From Selaginella moellendorffii (taxonomy: Eukaryota; Plantae; Lycopodiophyta): 64,000 nt of DNA. Below are positions 49,693 through 63,005 of this stretch, in pieces. The stretch spans positions 186,001 to 250,000 of the forward strand of contig NW_003314363.1 of assembly GCF_000143415.4 (NCBI RefSeq). Reading direction: 5' to 3'. The notes beneath the pieces are model-generated. The model was not told where the DNA came from. It did not search any database and saw only the letters and a program-made list of their open reading frames with translations. The translations under genes were made by a program, and so were the position numbers. How positions within the stretch are numbered: position 1 is the first letter of the stretch; each line of letters begins with the position of its first letter.

Positions 49693-50338
49693 TCCAGCTC
49701 TTGATTCTTGAGATGGATCACTCCTGATTGTTTGGAGTTCCTTTTGATTATGACGAAGAAAATAAAGAACTAGAAGTGAATCTAACAGTGTTGTTGTATA
49801 GCGCTAGTCACTGAAGCAAAGCTCCTTCTTGGCTTGGAAGGTAATTGTCCGAATAGAAAACCTCTATTGATATTTTGAGTGAAATCCACCGTCCGGAGCG
49901 TGGCCGTCCACGTATCGCGGTCGTTGCGAGGTAGATCGCTTTCACGCAACGACTTTCACATGACTACCTCACAAAGATCGTTAAAAGTATACAGTCGAGC
50001 TAATGATTTTTCACTACGGGATGCCACGTGGACTGGCCCTCCACCAACCAGGTAAATGCTGGCGGTGCCAGCTCGTCTATCAGGAGGGCCTTGATTACAT
50101 GGCCAGCTCAGCAGCAAGGAATGCTCGCTATGGTGGGTGTTGCTTTCGTTTTGTTAGGGTTCTTGAGGCCGCGAGGAGGAAGGGCGCAGGTATGGTGTCA
50201 CGATTCCGAGCAAGGTGGGTCTCTGTTCTTGGAGGGAAGGAGGTAGCGAGGACGGCACGCTAGAAAGATTTCGTGGATTTTGGTGCTTTCTAGCTCCCCG
50301 CTTTTCTCCTCTTGCATTGCGGTGCTGCGCTCGTCACA

Positions 50339-52813
50339 ATGCCGTCGAGTCCGAATTACAGCGTCCGGGCGCGCAAGGTTGAGAAGATTTTCAAGCAGTT
50401 CGATGGCAACGGCGATGGCAGGCTCAATCGCGACGAGATGGCAGCGCTGGTCATTGCCGTGAATCCCCGGGTGAAATTCAGCGACGAGCAGATCAGAGCT
50501 ATCCTGGACGAGGTGTTTCGGACCTATGGAGAGTTCATCGATGGCAAGAAGGGGCTCACTTTCGACGGGCTCTTGAGGACTTACGACGATGGCGCCGGGG
50601 ACGTGGACAGGGATTTCGATGCGCTGGGCTTGCAGCTGGAGAAAGACGACGGTGCTGGAGCTGGGACGGATGTGGAGAGCGTGGGAGACGAGAGCAGGAG
50701 TAGCGAGCCAACGGGGCTATCAAAGGCTGGTGGCGTGGTCTCGATCATGGACGAGAGACCGGAGGCTGCAAGCGCCAAACGCAGGCAGAATGTAGGTGCT
50801 TGGGCGGCTTCACCCAACAATGGGATTGTCTACGACGATACGTGGAGACTCGTGGAGGATCTGGAAATTCTGCTTCGACGAGCCGAGGCCAAGATCGAGG
50901 CACGGAGGAAAGCGAAGCTGAGCAGGAAGAAATCGTCGTCGGCTAATGGTGTGGATGTCTCCGGCCAGCTTGCGGGTGGTGACGAAGTCGTGAGAAGAAC
51001 CATGCACGACCTCGGGACGGAGTCATCGGTTTACCAAAAGGCTCTGGGAGATCTTCGCCAGAAAGCTGATGCTTCGAGAACGCAGGACGAGGCGTTTGAT
51101 GCACATATGGCCATGGGACGCTCGCTCTTTGATCACAAGTTCTACGAGGAAGCTCTGATCTGCTTCAAGAGAGCGACCGAGCTCCGGCCAACCGACGTGC
51201 GACCGCATTTTCGGACGGGCAACACTCTTTACTCGCTCGAGAAGTTTTTGGAAGCACGAGAGGCGTACGAGCTGGCATTGGATGCTGCAAACACCGGAAA
51301 TCCTCAGTGGACCAACCTTGTTCCGCAGATCCACGTCAACTTGGGAGTTGCTCTGGAAGGCGAAGGCATGCTGCTGAACGCTTGTGAGCACTACAGAGAA
51401 GCAGCGATACTCCATCCTCCTCACTATCGAGCTCTTAAACTTCTGGGAAGCGGCCTGTATGGAGTTGGCGAATACAGAGCGGCAGAAAAGGCTCTCGGCG
51501 AAGCGATCTTTTTGAAGTCGGACTATGCTGATGCTCACTGCGATCTCGGGTCTGTTCTTCATGCTTTGGGGGACGATGAAAGAGCCATAGTGGAGTTCCA
51601 GAAGGCTATTGATATCAAGCCGGATCACATGGACGCACTGTACAACCTTGGAGGACTGTTGCGTGACACAGGGAGGTTTCAGAGAGCAGCAGAGGTTTAC
51701 TCGAGGGTGCTCTCTTTGAATCCTAGTCACTGGCAAGCGCAGCTAAACAGAGCGGTTTCTTTACTCGGTGCCGGTGATACCGAGGAAGCAAGGAAGGCGC
51801 TGAAAGAAGCCTTCAAGATGACAAACAGGGTCGAGCTTTATGATGCTATCGGCCACCTCAAGCACCTCCAGAAGAAACCGAAGGGACTGAATGGAATGAT
51901 CAAAGGTGCCCAGGATGTCGAGCGCAGCGACAGTGGCTTTGTCATCGCAGATCCGTCAACTTTCACAAGAGTTGGCAACAAAACGACACCTCGACCGTGG
52001 ATTGCGCACGCTCTTAAGATCCGGGCTTTTCAGAAGCATACCAGGCTCCATCGCTGCAACCTCGCCAGCTTGAGCAAAGAGATGGCAAACAAACCATCGG
52101 TATCTCAAACAGCCGGTACAGCCGGGCACATTTCGGAGGCGCTCATACGGAAGGCAGATCTTGAGAAGTCTCTGAGCAGAATGCTCAGCTTCTTGCCACC
52201 GACTACTTTTCAGTCGGCGGTGAAGGCAATCAACGAGAAAGTGCTGAGCGTGCTGGACAAAGTAGGCTCTGGTCGAGTGGACCTGGGAATGTTCTTGGCG
52301 ACAATAGCACCGCTCTGCGCTGGTCCAGTCGACAAGAGGAAGCGGACGGCTTTCGACTGCCTGGTGCACCGATCGACCAAGGGACTGGGTGCCGAGATCG
52401 TCAAGTCGGACGCTAAAACGTACTTCAAGCACCTGCGGGCCATTTACTTATCCTCCGAGTCCACGAGCGAGCTGTGGGAAGTTCGTGGCGAAGACGAGCA
52501 CGCCAACATCTCGTATCCCGAGTTCGTGGAGATGTTTGACGACCGGGACTGGGCCTTTGGCGTTCTGCACACCGTGGTGAAGCTCGAGGCCGGGGACCGA
52601 GTTCGTCACAATGGGATAGCCTGCGCGGTGTGCTCGTATCCCATAACAGGTCCTCGTTTCAAGGAGACAAACGCCAACTTCAGCCTGTGCTCTACGTGCT
52701 ACGGCGATGGAAAAGTCCCGGATCACCCCAAGCAGGAGAGCTACTCCTTCCGGGAGTACAACTCGGAGACGGACGCTGTCAAGGACAAGCTACGATTCCT
52801 CGGAAGGTCATAG
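50339..52813 (+). CDS. EF-hand + TPR + ZZ-type zinc finger protein (At1g05150-like), intronless CDS
   Basis: FDGNGDGRLNRDE EF hand, AVNPRVKFSDEQI, TPR array (DAHCDLGSVL.., DALYNLGGL..), CAVCSYPITGPRFKE..LCSTCY. Confidence 0.93.
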   Translation: MPSSPNYSVRARKVEKIFKQFDGNGDGRLNRDEMAALVIAVNPRVKFSDEQIRAILDEVFRTYGEFIDGKKGLTFDGLLRTYDDGAGDVDRDFDALGLQLEKDDGAGAGTDVESVGDESRSSEPTGLSKAGGVVSIMDERPEAASAKRRQNVGAWAASPNNGIVYDDTWRLVEDLEILLRRAEAKIEARRKAKLSRKKSSSANGVDVSGQLAGGDEVVRRTMHDLGTESSVYQKALGDLRQKADASRTQDEAFDAHMAMGRSLFDHKFYEEALICFKRATELRPTDVRPHFRTGNTLYSLEKFLEAREAYELALDAANTGNPQWTNLVPQIHVNLGVALEGEGMLLNACEHYREAAILHPPHYRALKLLGSGLYGVGEYRAAEKALGEAIFLKSDYADAHCDLGSVLHALGDDERAIVEFQKAIDIKPDHMDALYNLGGLLRDTGRFQRAAEVYSRVLSLNPSHWQAQLNRAVSLLGAGDTEEARKALKEAFKMTNRVELYDAIGHLKHLQKKPKGLNGMIKGAQDVERSDSGFVIADPSTFTRVGNKTTPRPWIAHALKIRAFQKHTRLHRCNLASLSKEMANKPSVSQTAGTAGHISEALIRKADLEKSLSRMLSFLPPTTFQSAVKAINEKVLSVLDKVGSGRVDLGMFLATIAPLCAGPVDKRKRTAFDCLVHRSTKGLGAEIVKSDAKTYFKHLRAIYLSSESTSELWEVRGEDEHANISYPEFVEMFDDRDWAFGVLHTVVKLEAGDRVRHNGIACAVCSYPITGPRFKETNANFSLCSTCYGDGKVPDHPKQESYSFREYNSETDAVKDKLRFLGRS

Positions 52814-53664
52814 AAAGGGAGTTCTTCTGCTGGTGCTCAGTACCCCTGCCAAATTGGTGGGTACGTATCCTTTTCCTGTTGTTTTCTTCCCGTTACTCAC
52901 TGCTCATCGTCGTTTTCATTCGCAGGTGCTAGCTACCAGCAGAAGCTGTGTGTAGATATACGTCGTGGTTACTGGTTGGAAGATTTTCATGGTCGACGAG
53001 AGAAATAAGCCAGTGTAATGTGAAGAACGAAAGAAAAGTCTGGTGAGCTTTTCTTTGCTTTTTCTTTTTGCTTCTTCTTGTGTGTGTTGAACTTCGAGAT
53101 AATCCAGATATGTTTTGTTTATCCAATCGATGAGGATATCTTGCAGTGGTGGACAAAGAGAATTCCATCACAGGGAATCTTTTACGCTCGTCACACTGAG
53201 CGGATTGATCGGGACAAAAAAGAAGAACCGATCATCCAGAGCTAAGTTTAATCTCAAGACTTTGACCCTCGAGGAGTACCTGGGTACTTAGTGGAGATTA
53301 CGTCGGGCTCTGCTTATTCTACTAACTTCTCGCCTTTTCGATGCATGTAAGACGTCGCGATCCGGCTGGGACTATGGAAGAAAAGTCAGATCACGGGGCA
53401 CACAAAAAAAAAGATGGAGAGAGAGAAGAAGTGGAGGAAATTTTCGAGCAAGAGAGCTTGAAAGCTCACAGGAAATGAGAGAAGTGAGTAGCGTATAAAA
53501 ATGTCGGTGTTCTAAAGGGAAGAACTCCCGGTTCTACGCGAAAGGCGATGGTGGTATGAGAACGGTGGGTCATATCAATGAAAGTGGGAAAGAAAGGGGG
53601 CAAAAGTTGTCAAGGAAAGAAATAGAGTGATCTCTTCTCTCTCGTCTAGAGCTGGATTTAGGTC

Positions 53665-53712
<48 letters not shown>
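53665..53712. repeat. Compound (GT)n(GA)n microsatellite
   Basis: About 12 GT units followed directly by about 12 GA units. Confidence 0.95.
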
Positions 53713-53713
<1 letters not shown>

Positions 53714-53993
53714 CTTCTTGTGTAACGCTCTCTTCTTCCTTTCTAGCGATTAGCCTTCGAGGAGGGAAGATTTTAGGGCGCGCTTGCGCTTGTGGACGCG
53801 GTCACCGGTTCTTCGCAATTTGGGCGCGATTTGTGGCTCTTCTAGGGCGGGCAATGCGGGCGCTGGAATGCAGACTGGAAATGGGAGCTGGCGCCGGGGG
53901 ATGAGAGCCATGAGGGAAGGATCCAGGCCTTCTTCTTGTTCTTCCTCCTCCCTTCCTTCTCCCTCGTCGCCCTGCTAGGAATCACACTGCAAT

Positions 53994-56393
53994 ATGATCG
54001 ATCAGCTGGTCAACTTCGTAATTCGCCCTCCCAGGTGAGCAAATTCCCCCGCCGCGATTCCACTGCTCATCGAAATTCCTCTTTCTTTTGTCTGGCACAG
54101 GGCGGATTACATGCCCTCCCATGATCTACTGGAGCGCGAGTTTGTGCTCAAGGGACATAGATACGAGCGTAAAGACTTAGAGGCAAGTTTGTTCGTTAGA
54201 ATAGTTCTCGTCTTTATCATCTTTTGGCCGCGTTCTAAAAGCTTCCTTCGTCTCTTCCCTACGAGCAGATTACCAACAGTCGCGGCCACGTACTGCAATG
54301 CAGCCATTACAGACCACGTCCCCTACCGGAAGATGTCTCGCTTCCTTGCGTGATTTATTGCCATGGAAACAGGTTTGTCCAGAGGAATTTACTTCCACTT
54401 CTTTATTCTTTGGCTGTGGTTTTGGCAGTGGGTGCCGAGCTGATGCAAACGAGGCTGCCATAATTTTGCTCCCCTCGAACATCACCGTCTTCACGCTTGA
54501 TTTCTCTGGCTCGGGTCTGTCTGAAGGGAAGTATGTTAGCTTAGGCTGGAATGAGGTATGATCTATCATCTGAGCCTTTGTTTTGTTTTTCCTGACTTTG
54601 TGGTATTTTAGACTGATGATCTCAAGGCTGTTGTAACGCATCTTCGCAAGGACAAACAAGTCAGCCTCGTTGGTTTGTGGGGACGTTCGATGGGAGCTGT
54701 GACCAGGTTTGTAAAAGCACGGTTTGCTGACAAGTTGGATTGACTTGCTTGGATATTGTTGTGCAGTCTTTTCTATGGAGCACAAGATCCATCCATCGCT
54801 GGGATGGTTCTGGATAGTCCATTTTCCAACTTGTTTGAGCTTATGCTAGAGCTTGTAGACGTGTACAAAATTCGACTTCCTAAGTTTACTGTAAGTGATG
54901 GTTTGCGTTGTGGCGGATGAAAAACTCGGTTTTCTTTGTATAGGTAAAGGTAGCTGTTCAATATATGCGGAGGCTAATCCTCAAGAGAGCTCAATTTGAC
55001 ATTATGGACCTCGACGTTATAAAGGTTTGCTGAGCAAAGCAAAGAGTTCTTTAAGCTATGTACAGGAGTATTTTTGTGCTGTCAGGTAGCTCAGAAAAAC
55101 TTCGTACCGGTGTTATTTGGTCATGCAACTGAAGACTTGTTTATTCAACCTCACCATTCAGATGCGATATTTAAGGCGTATGGAGTATGTTATCGTTTTT
55201 TCCTGAGTTATAACTTCGACTTGCAAAATTACCAGGGAGACAAGAACATCATTAAGTTTGAGGGAGATCACAACTCTGCCAGGCCCCAGTTTTATTACGA
55301 CTCAGTCACCATTTTCTTTTACAATGTGCTGCGTCCACCTAGCGAGACCTACGCGGAATCGGTGCCAGTTCCTGATCCTTTGTATTATGACGTAAACGGA
55401 TATGTCTTTGACGAGGACATTGATGAGGTAGTTTGCGCACGCTTGCCGTTTGAAGTCTGCTGACAAAAGGTTTTCTCGACTTTAGAACATGCTATACGAG
55501 ATCATGAAGGGAATGCAAGCTGCAAACCCCAAGCCTGACGAAAATGGTGCAACATCGCAGGCACAACAAAGAGTCGTAGGAGGTACAATATTTTCTCCTT
55601 CACTGGACGAGAAGCATAAAGTTTTTATATCCAGGAGTCGCTGCTAAAACAGACTCCAGTTCTACGGAGGACGCCATCAATCAATCACGCTCTCGGTGGC
55701 AAATGAGTAGGACTGTTGTATGTAGTGTGCCGCTGCTCTTGTCATTTGGTGCTTGCATGATTAATTTTTCCTTTTCGCTTTCGCAGGTTCCTTACGACAA
55801 TACAGAGCAAGTAGAAGACGCTGCGGAGCTAATGAAGAGGATGGACCAATGTGGCGAGTCTGCCTCTTGTTTACATACTCCTGAGGTTAGCTGCTCAATA
55901 ACTTAACTCTTCGTTGTCTAAAATCGTTGCTAAATTCTCCAGGCCGAGCAAAACGATGCCTGCTCCCGGTGCGTCTCCAGCTCCGTATCAAATGGTCTCG
56001 ATGATTCGTGGCGAGGAGAAACCGGCTCGGATTCATTCCAAGTTTCACCCAGCTCGTCCGATGGCTTTGCCCACTTCCCATCCACGTTTGACGACGAAGA
56101 GAGGGTGAGTAGCGCTTGATCCTCGCGTAGCTAAGTTGGAGGCTCTTCAACTTTGTGTTTAAACGACTTTATACTCGCAGATGGTGATGGAAGCGATTGC
56201 TGCGTCTCTGGAAGAGATGAGCCTCCGATCCAAAGAAGCGGCGTCCAGGTCTCAAGGTGCTGCTGCTCCTGTTGCTGTTACTGCTGCGAGCCCAACAGCG
56301 TCGACGAGCAGTAAGCTCGAAACGTTTGGGCAAAGGCTGCGAAGTGGGCTGTTTAGAGGCATGAACAAACGAAGCAACAGCTCTCACTCCTAA
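53994..56393 (+). CDS. Alpha/beta-hydrolase family protein (YqkD-like plant family) with a C-terminal UIM-like acidic segment, multi-exon
   Basis: MIDQLVNFVIRPPR, PCVIYCHGNSGCRAD, LDFSGSGLS, nucleophile LWGRSMGA, GDHNSARP. One GC-AG intron at 54183-54268. Confidence 0.92.
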
Positions 56394-56754
56394 GATGCTT
56401 GTATTTTTCTTTTGATCTTTTCACATTGATTTGATTTTTCACTGTAAAAATAATATCAGCAACTTTTGTGGAAAAGCTTAACTAAGTGATAATTAAATTA
56501 GAATTCAAGATCTTGCGATGGCGTCGTAGTTGAAGTCTCTCTGTGGCATGGCTTTGTTACTCTAGAATTATAAACTATGCCTCCGGTGGAGGATGCCGGA
56601 GAGGGCAGTGAGTGAATTCCAGTAATTTCGGAGAGGGAAAAGCTAACTGGAAGTCTTGATTCCAGCCATCCAGTCAAGAACTGCCACTTTGCATGTCGTT
56701 TACTTATCATCGATTCTCTTTGATAGATTTTCTTTGCAAAAGAAGCTTTAGATC

Positions 56755-57252
56755 ATGTCTCGCGCACTAAGTTTGTTCTTCTTCATTCTCTTGGAGGCTG
56801 CTGCGGTGACCTCTCCGCCAGGGAAGAATGAAACAGGTATATAACCATTTGCACAATCCCTTTTGTCCAATAATCTCAGATTCGCCTATCTCCAATCGCA
56901 ATTGTTTTTGATGATCTCAAGTCTCGATTGATGTTCCTGAAAAGATCCATGCCTGCATCCGCTTGCATGCTTTGGTATGCACATAGTTCTTCAATGTTTT
57001 TCCTTCCACAGTGATGGGTACGACTGCTAAGCAACTGGATTCCAATTCCACTTCAAAAATTGCGAGATCTATTTTGAAGACAATATTCTTGACATGATCA
57101 TGTTGTTATAGCAGCCAACCATCATCTCTGGTGATCAGGAGCAGCAAAGCTTCATTATCGGTGACCCCTCTGATATATGGATCCCAACACTTACGATTTT
57201 AATCGTTGCCATAGTGATCATAGGAAAAGAATCTTATATTTATTTAATATAA
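56755..57252 (+). pseudogene. Decayed paralog of the secreted DYIY-peptide precursor
   Basis: Exon 1 (56755-56836) reads MSRALSLFFFILLEAAAVTSPPGKNET. The exon-2 GT donor is lost, the TATA region is deleted and DYIY is replaced by other sequence. Confidence 0.65.
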
Positions 57253-57865
57253 ATCCATTTGGCTGGGTATAAATTTCTTTGTAATTTCTCCTTCGAAATT
57301 ATATTGATATAGGTTAATCATTCAAAGTTAACAGCACTGGAGCACTCCCTCGATGTTCTAGATGCAATCGTCCAAAGTTCTATCTATTGAGACCCGTGGT
57401 CGCAGCGGGCAGCCACGTTGATCCCAGGTGATGTTGAAGCATCACAAAACGAAGTTGGATGAGCATTCGAGGGGGACCTAACTCTATATGGATGCATCCT
57501 ATACACTTATTAGTCCTCCTAGTCCAATGGTGCTGCCCATGGAATTGCTAACATCGATAGAGGCTTCAAACCGGATGTGGCTCTGTACATATCACTGCAA
57601 GATCGTTGTGTGAGAGATCCAAGCCAAATTTAATAAATGTGAGTTTTATGATTCTCGTGAGTGAATTCCAGTAATTTCGGAGAGGGAAAAGCTAACTGGA
57701 AGTCTGGTTTCCAGCCATCCAGTCAAGAACTGCCACTTTGCATGTCGTTTCACTGGTTGACCTTTCCCGGCAGTGTATATATACAATCTCCACGCAAAAC
57801 GCTGATCATATCATCCATCTCTTTCTCACTTTGATAGATTTTCTTTGCAAAAGAAGCTCTAGATT

Positions 57866-58331
57866 ATGTCTCGCGCACTAAGTTTGTTCTTCTTCGTTCT
57901 CTTGGTGGCTGCTGCGGTGACCTCTCGGCCAGTGAAGAATGAAACAGGTATATAAATCTCTCCAATCTCGACTGGAATTCGCCTATCTCCAACCGCAATT
58001 GTTTTCGATGATCTCTAATCTCGATTGAAGAACATCAAGTTCCTGAAAAATCCATGCCTACATTCGCTTGCATGATTTGCAGATTGTAACTATGCAAGAG
58101 TGTCACCTGGTTCTTACGTGTTTACAATCGTTTTTTTCTTCCACAGTGATGGCTACAACTGCTAAGCAACTGGATTCGTCACCATCGTCCACGAGACCTG
58201 AGGTAAGACAGTCCTGTATTTTTTAAGACAGCATTCGTGACATTATCGGGTTGTTAATATAGCAGCCAATCATCTCTGGTGATCAGGAGCAGCAAGCCCA
58301 TGTCGACTACATTTACGATTTTAGTCCCTGA
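57866..58331 (+). CDS. Small secreted peptide precursor, phytosulfokine-like (68 aa; exons 57866-57947, 58147-58202, 58263-58331)
   Basis: Spliced product MSRALSLFFFVLLVAAAVTSRPVKNETVMATTAKQLDSSPSSTRPEQPIISGDQEQQAHVDYIYDFSP. Canonical GT..AG introns with matching phases; signal peptide; TATATATA at ~57775. Confidence 0.75.
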
Positions 58332-59044
58332 TGAAACGAGGCATCAATAAGAGAGTGAAAGAAATTCTCATATATTTAATATAAATCGATATAAATTCTT
58401 GTACTATCTAAATATTTTTAATTTCTATATTTTTATATATTTTAAAATATTAAAACAAAAATACTTAGATGGAATAAATATTACAATAAATCTAGTCTTC
58501 TTTCTAGATCAAATCTGATCTCATTCTCTAGCACTTTTGCAAGTTCAACTGTAATTAAAGTGGACTCCGTGATTTGAAGCTTGGTTCTGTCACAAAAAGA
58601 TCTCCAAAAGTCAGATGAACAGCAAACAATATTCTTGAAAGCAAGGTGCCTTTTCCTTTTGCCCGTTTTCTTCTTCTCATCCAGGATTCTTGCCATGCTG
58701 AAAGCACGGCACTCTGAAAAACTTGTCATCTCCTTACAAGAAAGTTGGCAAAACTGTACATCTCTCACACATTGGCCATCTTTTCCAGTGGGCAAGTCAG
58801 AAACTCCTCTTGGAAAATTTGGGTACTCCCAAAAGTCAATCCTCTCCCGGGTGCTCATCGGCTATAAGAATCGATCAATCTCAAAAGCTTTTGAGCAACA
58901 AAGGGAGCTTTCAGTGCCAGCGGCAGTAAGTTACAAAGAAAAGCTCTCTAGATGGATCTTAAGACCTGTCGTGGTATCTTTCGCAGGCTGGATCACTTCA
59001 CATACCGATCGATCTGATTTGGCAAAGCTATAACAAGCACGAAG

Positions 59045-60761
59045 ATGGCGACCACCACCACCAACAAGAACGACCAGCTCAACGTTCTCGACGCGCTAGA
59101 CACAGCCAAGACGCAGTGGTATCATGTCACGGCCGTGATCATCTCGGGTATGGGCTTCTTCACCGATGCCTACGATCTCTTTTGCATCTCCCTCCTCACC
59201 AAGCTCCTGGGCCGGATCTACTACTACGACCCCTCCACTGGGACGCCGGGCGAGCTCCCAGTGAGCATCAATGCCGCCGTGAGCGGCATCGCGCTGTGCG
59301 GCACCTTCACGGGCCAGCTCTTCTTCGGCTGGCTGGGCGATCGCCTGGGCCGCAAGAGAGTCTACGGCATCACCTCCATGATCATGGTCGTCTTCTCCAT
59401 CGCCTCGGGCTTCTCGTTTGGATCCAGCGCGCGTGCAGTCATCGGCACGCTCTGCTTCTTCCGCTTCTGGCTGGGATTCGGAATCGGCGGCGACTACCCG
59501 CTGTCCGCGACGATCATGTCCGAGTACGCCAACACCAAGACGCGGGGGGCGTTCGTGGCGGCGGTGTTTGCCATGCAAGGCGTGGGGATCTTGGTGGCGG
59601 CCGTGGTGACCATGGCGGTGTCCGGGGCGTTCATGGTGGCACTCAGAGCCCCCAGCTTCGAGGAGAGCCCCGGACTGTCCACGCCGCACGAGGCCGACTA
59701 CGTGTGGAGGATCGTCTTCATGCTGGGCAGCGTCCCGGCAGCGCTCACGTACTACTGGCGGATGAAGATGCCTGAGACCGCGCGGTACACCGCGCTCGTG
59801 GCCGGGGACCTGGACCGGGCAAACGCCGACATGAGCAAAGTCCTCCAGGTCGACCTCACGGACGATCACCATCGTGGCGTTGATCATCAGGTACTTTGGC
59901 CTCCATTCTCCTTAACGTTTGTTCTTTGGCTTGAAACAGTTCAAGATTGCTAAGAAGGTCCAGGCTCAATCATCCTTCCCGCTCTTTTCATCACGCTTTG
60001 CGAGGAGACACGGCCTCCACCTCTTCGTCACTACCACCACCTGGTTCCTCCAGGCCTTCGCCTTCTACAGCCAACAGCTCTTCCAAAAGGACATCTACAC
60101 CCAGGTGGGATTCATCAAGCCCGCCAAGACCATGTCCGCGCTCCAGGAGGCGCTGGTCACCGCGAGAGCGCAAGCCCTGGTGGCGCTGTGCGGGACGGTC
60201 CCGGGCTACTGGGTCACCGTCGCGCTCATCGATCGCCTGGGCCGCAAGCCCATCCAGCTCCTTGGCTTCCTTATGATGGGCACTTTCATGTATGCTCTGG
60301 CCGTCCCCTACGAGAGCTACTGGCGGGGCAAGCACCTGGACGCCGCCACTGGCAAATACCAAGGCGGCCACAACGTTGGCTTCGTGGTGCTCTTCGCGCT
60401 CACATTCTTCTTCGCCAACTTTGGACCCAACAGCACCACCTTCATCGTCCCCGCGGAGGTGTTCCCCGCGCGGCTGCGCTCGACGTGCCACGGCATCTCC
60501 GCGGGCGTGGGCAAGATTGGATCCATCCTGGGCGCCTTTGGCTTCGTCTACGTGTCGCAGCCGACCAGGAAATCCGAGCTCCCGCGGGGATACCACCACC
60601 CGGGGATTGGGATGAGGAACGCGCTGCTGCTGCTGGCCAGCGCCAGCATGCTGGGCTTCTTCATCTCGCTCCTCATGCCCGAGACCAAAGGTAAGAGCCT
60701 TGAAGAACTCTCTGGTGAAAGCGTCATGAATGAAAGCAAAGTTGATGTTCAAAGTGTTTAG
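59045..60761 (+). CDS. PHT1: PHT1 family phosphate:H+ symporter with one 49-nt intron (59891-59939) and an atypical TM7
   Basis: [12 protein letters not shown], signature [59 protein letters not shown]. Confidence 0.96.
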
Positions 60762-61803
60762 GCTATATTAATAAATTATGGAATTTTCAGTAAACACGCA
60801 TGGAAACCTAAAACGGAAAATGAGAAAGGAGCGTAAAGGAGCGTATAGATTTATCAAGTACCTATGAGAACTATATAAATTTAATTCCAGTTGTAAAGAG
60901 TACTTTTCCCTGCTTCTGGGAGCTCCTTTTGACGTGGCGATCCACCGAGGTGGCAGCGCCATGTGTTTGGCGCCAAAAGCTCAGAAGATTTTTATTGACC
61001 TAGCTTTCGATTCGATCGATGCGCCTGGCAGCAGATCGCGCGCACACACGGGAGGGCGCTGCCGCGACTGGCAGTGAGCGATCCCGCGCTCCCAGAATCC
61101 TTTCTTTTTTCCCCTCTTGCTCCTCCTTTCGCTCTTTTCTTATTGCGATTCTTTGTCGCGTATGTTGCAAAGGCTACGCAACAGAGGCTGAGTGTAGCTG
61201 TAATGATTCCCGAGCCCACAATGTGTCGCATCCATTGCCGTAGCTTTCCACTCTTCTTTTTCGGCTCCTCTACTGGAGAGCTCCAGGCCATTTGCTGCTC
61301 ACAGAGCGCACCATCCCACTGCGATTTGTCCTTCTACGAATCAGATCTTCTGCGCACTGTCGAATGCGAGTATTTTTTTTTTCCCCCTCAATTGACAATT
61401 CCACATTGGTTTTGTGTGATTAGTTTAAAGAAATGAAGATGAGCCAGCGCTATAAAGGGTGGAGGCCTCCTCGTCTCAGGGAAGTGGTGTCTCATTGCAA
61501 AGAATTCCACGCTCCTACAGTCCAGAGGTGCCTCTTCGAAAGCTTGGTGAGTTTTGTCATATTTTTTTTTCTCTCACTCTCTCTCTCTCTCTCACCCCCC
61601 CTCGACCTCCTAGATTCTTTCAGGTTGTTTCGGCTTTCCCGTGTTTTATTTGCTCGCATGCCTCTTCCCCCGGTTCTTCTAGTTCGTGTTTTTGATTTTA
61701 AAATGCACAGTCGATTCGATTTTCATCTAAGCCTACTCACTCAGGACTGTGAGATTCTTTCCCTTGCAGGCTAGCGTTTCACAGCTCCCTTTCGACATCA
61801 GCT

Positions 61804-63005
61804 ATGGGAGTGGTAGCGCTCGAGAGCTTTGAGCCGGCTCTGACACCTTCTCTCGATCACAGGGATAGCCACCACTCTGATCAGGAAATACCATCCATTG
61901 ATCTATTGCCTTTTTTCGAGCCAGATTCATCCCCAGGCATCGCAGCGGGCAGGGAACGAATAATTCAGGAGATCGCCAGAGCCTGCGAAGAATGGGGATT
62001 CTTCCAGGTTGTCAACCACGGCCTCGACTGCGACTTGATAACTCAGTCCCTCCGGGCTTCCAAGGATTTTTTCGATCTCTCCATGGAAGAGAAGATGAAA
62101 GTGAGACCCCCTCCAGGAACTTGTCCCGTGCCCATGGGATTCTGTCACAACAGTGGAATTGACGGCCTTGTGGAGAGAAAGGAACATCTTTTCTTCTTCG
62201 CTGAGGATGGATCACCGACGAAGTCACCTGACAGTTTCTCGAAGTACAACGTTTGGCCGGTAAAGCCACAAAACTTCTGGTAAGACCTCTACTGTTCTTC
62301 TTTCTTCTTTCTTTCTTAGTCTCTGGGATTGATCGCAGCTCAATTGTCCGCGAGCGACTTATTGTCGAGGGCCAGAGAACAGCGATTTTCCTGCTGAGTC
62401 TTATTTCCCGGAGCTTGGGACTGCCGGATAACTTCCTGTACGAGCACTACAAGGAGAAGATGAACGCTCTCATCATGCTCTTCTACCCGGTTTCAGACAT
62501 CCCGGAAGACATCGGCCTCCACAAGCACCAAGATGGGAACATTCTCAGCGTGGTGGCACAGAACGAGACCGAGGGACTCCAGGTCTTGAAGGACGACAAG
62601 TGGATCACAGTCAAGCCACGGACGGGGAGCTTGGTTGTCAACGTTGGCGACATTGTCCAGGTATGCTTTTCTTCTTCGTGATCTCCATTCTTTCATGCTT
62701 AGAAATTCATGGAGCTTTTACTTTGTCTCCCTCAGGTGTGGAGCAACGACAGATACAAAAGCGTCCAGCACCGAGTCATCAACAACGATCAAAACGTCCG
62801 CTACTCGTTCGCCTTCTCCTGTGTTCCTGGAGTGAGCACACTGGTAGCTCCGCTCCCGCAGTTCACTAGCGAGATCCAGCAGGCCCCGCGCTACCGGGAG
62901 TTCCAGTATGGGGAGTACATGATGTACAGATTCGAGAACAAGAAGATCGTATCCAAGAACTCGGAGGAGATCACCATCAAGTACTATTCAACCGCAGAGG
63001 AGTAA
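61804..63005 (+). CDS. 2-oxoglutarate/Fe(II)-dependent dioxygenase (DOXC class), 3 coding exons
   Basis: IPSIDL, ACEEWGFFQVVNHG, HQD iron motif, VVNVGDIVQVWSNDRYKSVQHRV, RYS 2OG motif. Confidence 0.95.

Follow-up and report, generated by a model that had tools for sequence, protein, structure and literature searches.

Positions 57866-58331 of the window (the whole 64-kb stretch of Selaginella moellendorffii DNA analysed here) are best explained as a real three-exon gene, absent from the annotation, that belongs to a lineage-specific family of secreted, phytosulfokine (PSK)-like sulfopeptide precursors, an explanation to which we give, taken as a whole, about an even chance. The family would be small, with conservation confined to the signal peptide and a C-terminal AH(V/L)DYIYDF block. 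The gene in the window would function like a PSK precursor, its PSK homology, its sulfation and its receptor being putative, and here too we place our confidence near the midpoint.

Gene structure and predicted product

The features of the locus are collected in Table 1. Reading of the DNA and its translation bore out, to the base, an earlier sequence-only reading of three micro-exons (82, 56 and 69 nt) joined in phase through GT..AG sites, together with its 68-aa product ending AHVDYIYDFSP, its TATA box ~90 nt upstream, its missing Cys pair and dibasic site (the product has 0 of either) and its lycophyte host, which is S. moellendorffii. Both acceptors of the NAGNAG at the end of intron 2 are in frame and give products of 68 aa (from 58263) or 67 aa (from 58266), while the frame read without splicing meets a stop after 29 codons. 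The product is laid out as Met-Ser-Arg, a 15-residue hydrophobic core, RPVKNET, a Ser/Thr/Pro-rich spacer, GDQEQQ and AHVDYIYDFSP; the YIY of AHVD-YIY lies four residues before the stop, which follows the conserved core DYIYDF by two codons. The hydrophobic signal peptide proposed earlier was recovered both by heuristics (Arg3, the 15-residue core and small residues at -3/-1, as AAA/V or VTS/R, the slash marking the cut) and by hydropathy: the Kyte-Doolittle 11-mer mean of the N-terminus peaks at 3.0 and is negative past residue 17, a profile that fits a cleavable signal peptide.

Table 1. Features of the peptide gene and its tandem copy (window coordinates; a slash marks an exon-intron boundary).
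Feature	Positions	Strand	Description
Decayed copy A	56610..57215	+	Upstream block 56610-56698; exon-1-like 56755-56836; exon-2-like from 57012; exon-3-like from 57115
89-nt upstream block	57659..57747	+	Near-invariant in all family copies; 5' edge of duplicated unit; candidate cis-regulatory module
TATA box TATATATA	57776..57783	+	83-90 nt 5' of ATG; read directly
Exon 1	57866..57947	+	82 nt; ATG, predicted signal peptide (residues 1 to ~20), RPVKNET; donor CAG/GTATAT
Intron 1	57948..58146	+	199 nt, GT..AG; 3' end ...CCACAG/
Exon 2	58147..58202	+	56 nt; variable Ser/Thr/Pro-rich spacer; donor GAG/GTAAGA
Intron 2	58203..58265	+	NAGNAG acceptor, AG at 58261-58262 and 58264-58265
Exon 3	58266..58331	+	66 nt, or 69 nt from 58263; PIISGDQEQQAHVDYIYDFSP + stop (58329-58331)
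DYIYDF core	58305..58322	+	Putative Asp-Tyr sulfation site and putative mature peptide YIYDF
Variable C-terminal tail	58323..58331	+	Ser-Pro-stop

The allelic copy in the second haplotype

A region of scaffold GL377576.1 (GL377576.1:286712-309186, hereafter L002), which holds SELMODRAFT_440495, is the allele of the window: it is 96.5% identical to window 50258-62851 over 12.6 kb and has the same order of genes (TPR, alpha/beta-hydrolase, PHT1 transporter, 2OG-oxygenase). GL377576.1 represents the other haplotype in the published assembly. The annotation of L002 leaves the interval from the hydrolase to PHT1 empty, and hence the peptide gene is missing from the gene models of both haplotypes.

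The allelic copy (L002 17513-17980) splices alike, and its product is identical as far as Phe: from the ATG through the Phe codon, none of the 195 coding bases differs. Intron 1 (199 nt) differs by one mismatch and one indel, and intron 2 (63 nt) by five mismatches. The last three codons carry three changes (Ser to Asn, a silent one in Pro, and a stop turned into Ser with a new stop behind it), so that three of the nine tail bases differ and the allele ends ...DYIYDFNPS. Given a non-coding allelic mismatch rate of 2.4% over 55500-59100, the absence of any change in 195 nt has a Poisson P of ~0.01; allelic diversity is low across all of 57600-58199, intron 1 included, which makes the allelic test only moderately discriminating. 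The unchanged coding stretch is therefore suggestive of constraint, not decisive. Neither haplotype shows damage to the open reading frame, to any of the four splice sites, to the TATA box or to the upstream block.

Among the shared neighbours, the TPR/EF-hand gene (At1g05150-like; window 50339-52810) has annotated products of 824 aa and 899 aa (SELMODRAFT_447866), both on the 621,399-bp scaffold of the window. The 90% cluster of the 824-aa protein holds S. moellendorffii entries, SELMODRAFT_440495 of GL377576.1 among them, and its next best relative, at 64% identity, is from the lycophyte Diphasiastrum.

A paralog and the pattern of conservation

A second copy of the gene lies ~200 kb off on the allele's scaffold, GL377576.1, at the locus annotated as SELMODRAFT_409681 (hereafter L001). 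It has the same three exons with the GT/AG sites kept, and its exon 3 (L001 10385-10450) encodes STISGDHEQQAHVDYIYDFNP and a stop, ending ...AHVDYIYDFNP; the TATA box is kept here as it is in the allele. At the position aligned with the NAGNAG, L001 has the second AG only, which marks 58266 as the homologous start of exon 3. The copies in the window, L001 and L002 have in common the three exons, an MSRALS... signal-peptide exon, a variable spacer and H-x-DYIYDF-(S/N)-P.

The annotated 113-aa model of SELMODRAFT_409681 (L001:10001-10968) contains exons 1 and 2 but leaves out the DYIY exon, continuing instead in downstream sequence. We rejected this splicing as the true structure, since the downstream segment is absent behind the window gene and broken behind a tandem copy described below, while the DYIY exon is conserved; the annotated model is probably mis-spliced, as judged from these sequence comparisons. 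Pfam found no domain in the annotated protein, its downstream part included, and hence the UniRef name 'Pectinesterase inhib...' is unbacked.

Conservation between the window gene and L001 is distributed unevenly. Identity is 82% in the TATA region, 96% in exon 1, 76% in intron 1 (58% counting gaps), 64% in exon 2 (with a 6-nt indel that keeps the frame), 66% in intron 2 and 88% in exon 3, rising to 93% in the final 57 nt. For exons 1 and 3 together, pN is 0.045 and pS 0.180 (pN/pS 0.25; six silent and five replacement changes; Fisher p = 0.018). Conservation of the signal peptide and the C-terminal peptide around a spacer drifting like the introns is a typical signature of a peptide-hormone precursor, which this pattern would fit.

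Within AHVDYIYDF, a single change, the silent TAC/TAT, separates the window gene, its allele and the paralog. Conservation stops exactly at Phe, and the tails that follow vary (SP in the window, NPS in the allele, NP in the paralog), which suggests that the functional unit would end at Phe and that the mature peptide would be YIYDF. The mature sequence DYIYDFSP put forward by the sequence-only reading did not hold in this comparison, YIYDF being the more likely form.

A decayed tandem copy and a shared upstream block

Within the window, a tandem unit that we call copy A starts 1,049 nt 5' of the unit of the window gene and carries the same 89-nt upstream block. In the window haplotype it has lost a 62-nt TATA segment and the exon-2 donor, gained ~40 nt of foreign filler and suffered an 8-nt deletion that destroys the Asp-Tyr; the TATA segment is deleted in both haplotypes. 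Allelic divergence across copy A is several-fold higher, and indel-rich. The decay of this unconstrained copy makes the intactness of the window gene meaningful.

The allele of copy A (L002:16428-16859, corresponding to window 56755-57215) can still be spliced into an open frame of 69-70 aa that ends in GSHLDYIYDFNP and a stop, a 1-nt deletion at its exon-2 donor offsetting the frame shift in exon 3. Both alleles of copy A have no TATA segment and have a Glu within the hydrophobic core. With the copy dead in the window haplotype and open in L002, it is a haplotype-polymorphic gene or pseudogene. The only RNA-seq reads placed on 56600-58750 match 34 nt of its filler (window 57148-57181) with flanks unlike the window, which suggests that this piece was copied from some expressed gene elsewhere. 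Behind copy A, window 57298-57420 holds a fragment resembling the downstream 'exons' of SELMODRAFT_409681 (LTALEHSLDVLDAIVQ...), with a stop inside; this fragment has no counterpart behind the window gene (copy B).

The 89-nt block of the window gene is 98.9% identical to that of L001 and 97.8% to that of copy A (introns, 66-79%). It occurs exactly twice in the window, from 56610 and from 57659, and also from L001 9781 and from L002 16283 and 17306. The copies are 96-99% identical to one another, lie ~120-210 nt 5' of each ATG and form the 5' edge of homology at all loci. As a structured RNA the block was rejected: Rfam gave no match, and its folding energy was no better than that of shuffles (z = 0.44). 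It is probably a shared promoter module.

Relation to phytosulfokine

PSK precursors, 80-120 aa in length, have a signal peptide and, close to the C-terminus, D-YIYTQ, with little conservation elsewhere (PMC10796568); AtPSK1 is cleaved at AHTD/YIYTQ/DLNL by SBT3.8/SBT1.1 (PMC13157962). The likeness to the seed-plant PSK flank AH-x-DYIY noted by the sequence-only reading stood up: seven of the eight residues match, and the Asp directly before Tyr-Ile-Tyr, which provides the Asp-Tyr context needed for sulfation by tyrosylprotein sulfotransferase (TPST), is invariant in the allele and the paralog. Like seed-plant PSK precursors, the window gene has (A)H-x-D-Y-I-Y near its C-terminus in that sulfation context, a short tail that appears dispensable and membership of a small, partly tandem gene family. 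Unlike them, it has Asp-Phe after YIY in place of Thr-Gln/Asn, so that Y-I-Y-D-F stands where the pentapeptide pattern is Y-[IV]-Y-T-[QN]; its product is shorter than their range, at 67-68 aa, and is without a Cys pair; and it has three exons and a lycophyte host.

In formal searches, the PSK profile PF06404 scored the product at 9.8 bits (E = 2.2), below its 25-bit gathering threshold, by matching only eight residues (57-64) to profile positions 75-82 of 88, and Pfam gave no match to the exon-3 peptides alone. A phmmer search with the 68-aa product against 1.84 billion representatives recovered no PSK precursor, only the Selaginella paralog and one spurious bacterial protein, a repeat protein that we rejected because it matched through a repeated 'APVISG' stretch; a homologous-protein search with the same product returned only the mis-modelled SELMODRAFT_409681. 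As PSK precursors share little beyond the motif, the phmmer null is weak evidence against homology. Of the earlier proposal of a divergent PSK-family or new sulfopeptide hormone, what stood was the secreted, PSK-like architecture with a conserved C-terminus, and what fell short was membership of the PSK family, in view of the PF06404 score and the phmmer result.

The fourth position of the putative peptide sets it apart from the plant forms, as all described plant PSK types have Thr there (PMC10796568; PMC13081851). Asp at this position is known only from a PSK mimic of root-knot nematodes, class theta, which has DYIYDN and is described in a preprint as absent from plants (PMC13081851). The window gene shares with this class D-Y-I-Y-D at the C-terminus of a secreted mini-protein; it differs in having Phe, not Asn, at position 5, class theta being an animal effector. 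Among bryophytes, motif searching has yielded putative PSK-like sequences in Marchantia polymorpha and Physcomitrium patens (Furumizu et al. 2021; PMC8462819). Like these, the window gene comes from a non-seed plant and has a YIY core with a non-canonical C-terminal part (MpPSK is YIYTSQ); unlike these, which have no Asp before the first Tyr, the Selaginella family keeps this Asp and the upstream His, and hence lies closer to the seed-plant flank than the bryophyte candidates do. The searchable literature names no Selaginella PSK, and YIYDF, DYIYDF and AHVDYIY occur in no plant paper within it.

The PSY, RGF/GLV and CIF families also have secreted precursors with an Asp-Tyr sulfation motif near the C-terminus, and their mature peptides run 13-21 residues beyond DY. 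The window gene has only six residues after DY, which leaves room for a PSK-sized peptide only.

In the six-frame translation of the 64-kb window, DY[IV]Y occurs once, at the core itself. Shuffles gave an expectation per 64 kb of 0.48 for DY[IV]Y and 0.01 for HxDY[IV]Y; genome-wide, the latter amounts to tens of sites expected by chance, and hence the motif alone is not significant. What takes the window gene beyond chance is the combination of a signal-peptide exon, canonical splicing in frame, a near-immediate stop and a motif kept in allele and paralog.

These same data can be read differently: the family may be real and secreted and yet be neither a relative of PSK nor a sulfated hormone, with a DYIY likeness that is convergent or coincidental and a C-terminus that serves another end, for example in directing sorting or processing, as a different kind of ligand or in defence. 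The lack of statistically significant similarity to PSK precursors speaks for this, as do the missing Cys pair, the shorter protein, the exchange of Thr-Gln for Asp-Phe, the chance frequency of HxDY[IV]Y and reviews that give no PSK outside seed plants (PMC10796568; PMC13074997). We nevertheless consider it unlikely, because the match to AH-x-DYIY stands at the same near-C-terminal place of a signal-peptide-bearing mini-protein, because conservation is centred exactly on that block, and because genuine PSK precursors likewise share little beyond the motif (PMC10796568). A PSK-like sulfopeptide precursor is the reading that we prefer.

Expression and the status of the window copy

No read fell on the exons of the window gene when 56600-58750 was compared with three raw S. 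moellendorffii RNA-seq runs (~9.2 million reads, ~12% of each run) and one DNA run, and indexed RNA runs queried with an 801-nt stretch and with exon 3 plus its 3' flank gave no match. The index matches to the gene were low-depth DNA contigs only, carrying the SNPs of the other haplotype, and the spliced protein is absent from a collection of 5.8 billion proteins. The spliced transcript across both junctions that the earlier reading entailed was not found in the three partly read RNA-seq runs or the indexed RNA runs, a result that gives it no support and is not proof of silence. Expression of the window gene is probably low or restricted.

The want of RNA signal in the accessible data sets would also follow if the family were functional and the window copy a silent duplicate, its frame still open through youth or gene conversion. 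The neighbouring copy A has already decayed, the low allelic diversity that takes in intron 1 makes identical exons weak proof of selection, and exon 2 of the window gene is the fastest diverged among the copies. On the other side, both haplotypes have everything undamaged from the upstream block and TATA box to the frame and the four splice sites, the differences between alleles are concentrated in intron 2 and the tail, outside the core, the exon 2 indel keeps the frame, and the pN/pS of 0.25 against the paralog demands that at least one lineage has been constrained. On balance, a silent duplicate seems to us rather improbable. Far less credible still is that there is no gene at all and that short ORFs and GT/AG dinucleotides fell into this arrangement by chance, which would account for the missing annotation in both haplotypes and the absence of RNA evidence in the data searched but not for an identical three-exon structure at a second locus, where exons and introns differ in conservation and the first two exons belong to an annotated gene.

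Proposed maturation and the origin of PSK signalling

A functional PSK-like precursor would mature along the following lines. The pre-pro-peptide would enter the ER through its signal peptide and be cleaved near residue 17-20; in the Golgi, TPST, for which the QQAHVDYIYDFSP peptide is a putative substrate, may sulfate tyrosines in the Asp-Tyr-Ile-Tyr-Asp stretch; and in the apoplast, a subtilase-type cut after Asp and loss of the short variable tail would release a sulfated YIYDF pentapeptide. The product has the Asp-Tyr context and the flanking acidic residues of a candidate sulfation site, and TPST genes are present in S. moellendorffii (PMC8462819). Sulfated YIYDF would be a phytosulfokine-like ligand in which Asp-Phe replaces Thr-Gln, and it may act on an LRR receptor kinase. 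Matsubayashi and colleagues are said to have found in 1996 that the sulfated tripeptide YIY keeps part of the activity of PSK, which makes a YIY-based variant plausible as a ligand.

PSK has been reported to be specific to seed plants, with none found outside them (PMC10796568), and its perception has been described as seed-plant-restricted (bioRxiv 10.1101/527754). A 2026 survey finds sulfopeptide families only from gymnosperms onward and the sulfating enzyme to be older (PMC13074997). Elsewhere, PSK is described as a vascular-plant innovation. We advance only tentatively, as a possibility that we do not favour, that YIYDF is the lycophyte phytosulfokine, that a sulfated Tyr-Ile-Tyr ligand with an AH-x-D flank already existed in the ancestor of vascular plants, and that the C-terminal half (Asp-Phe versus Thr-Gln) has co-diverged with the receptor.

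What the locus contributes is a comparison of two haplotypes, a precise boundary at Phe where the conserved block ends, a tail that is polymorphic for Ser/Asn and for the stop codon and, in the decaying tandem copy, an internal control. It also illustrates that the annotation of a reference genome can overlook peptide genes of this kind, or model them wrongly, in both of its haplotypes. Were YIYDF indeed a lycophyte PSK, PSK signalling would be no invention of seed plants. If selection does maintain AH-x-DYIY in a lycophyte family, that family becomes a specific candidate for the 'enzyme before substrate' gap, and one synthetic peptide with a few candidate receptors would allow tests of how PSK signalling arose.
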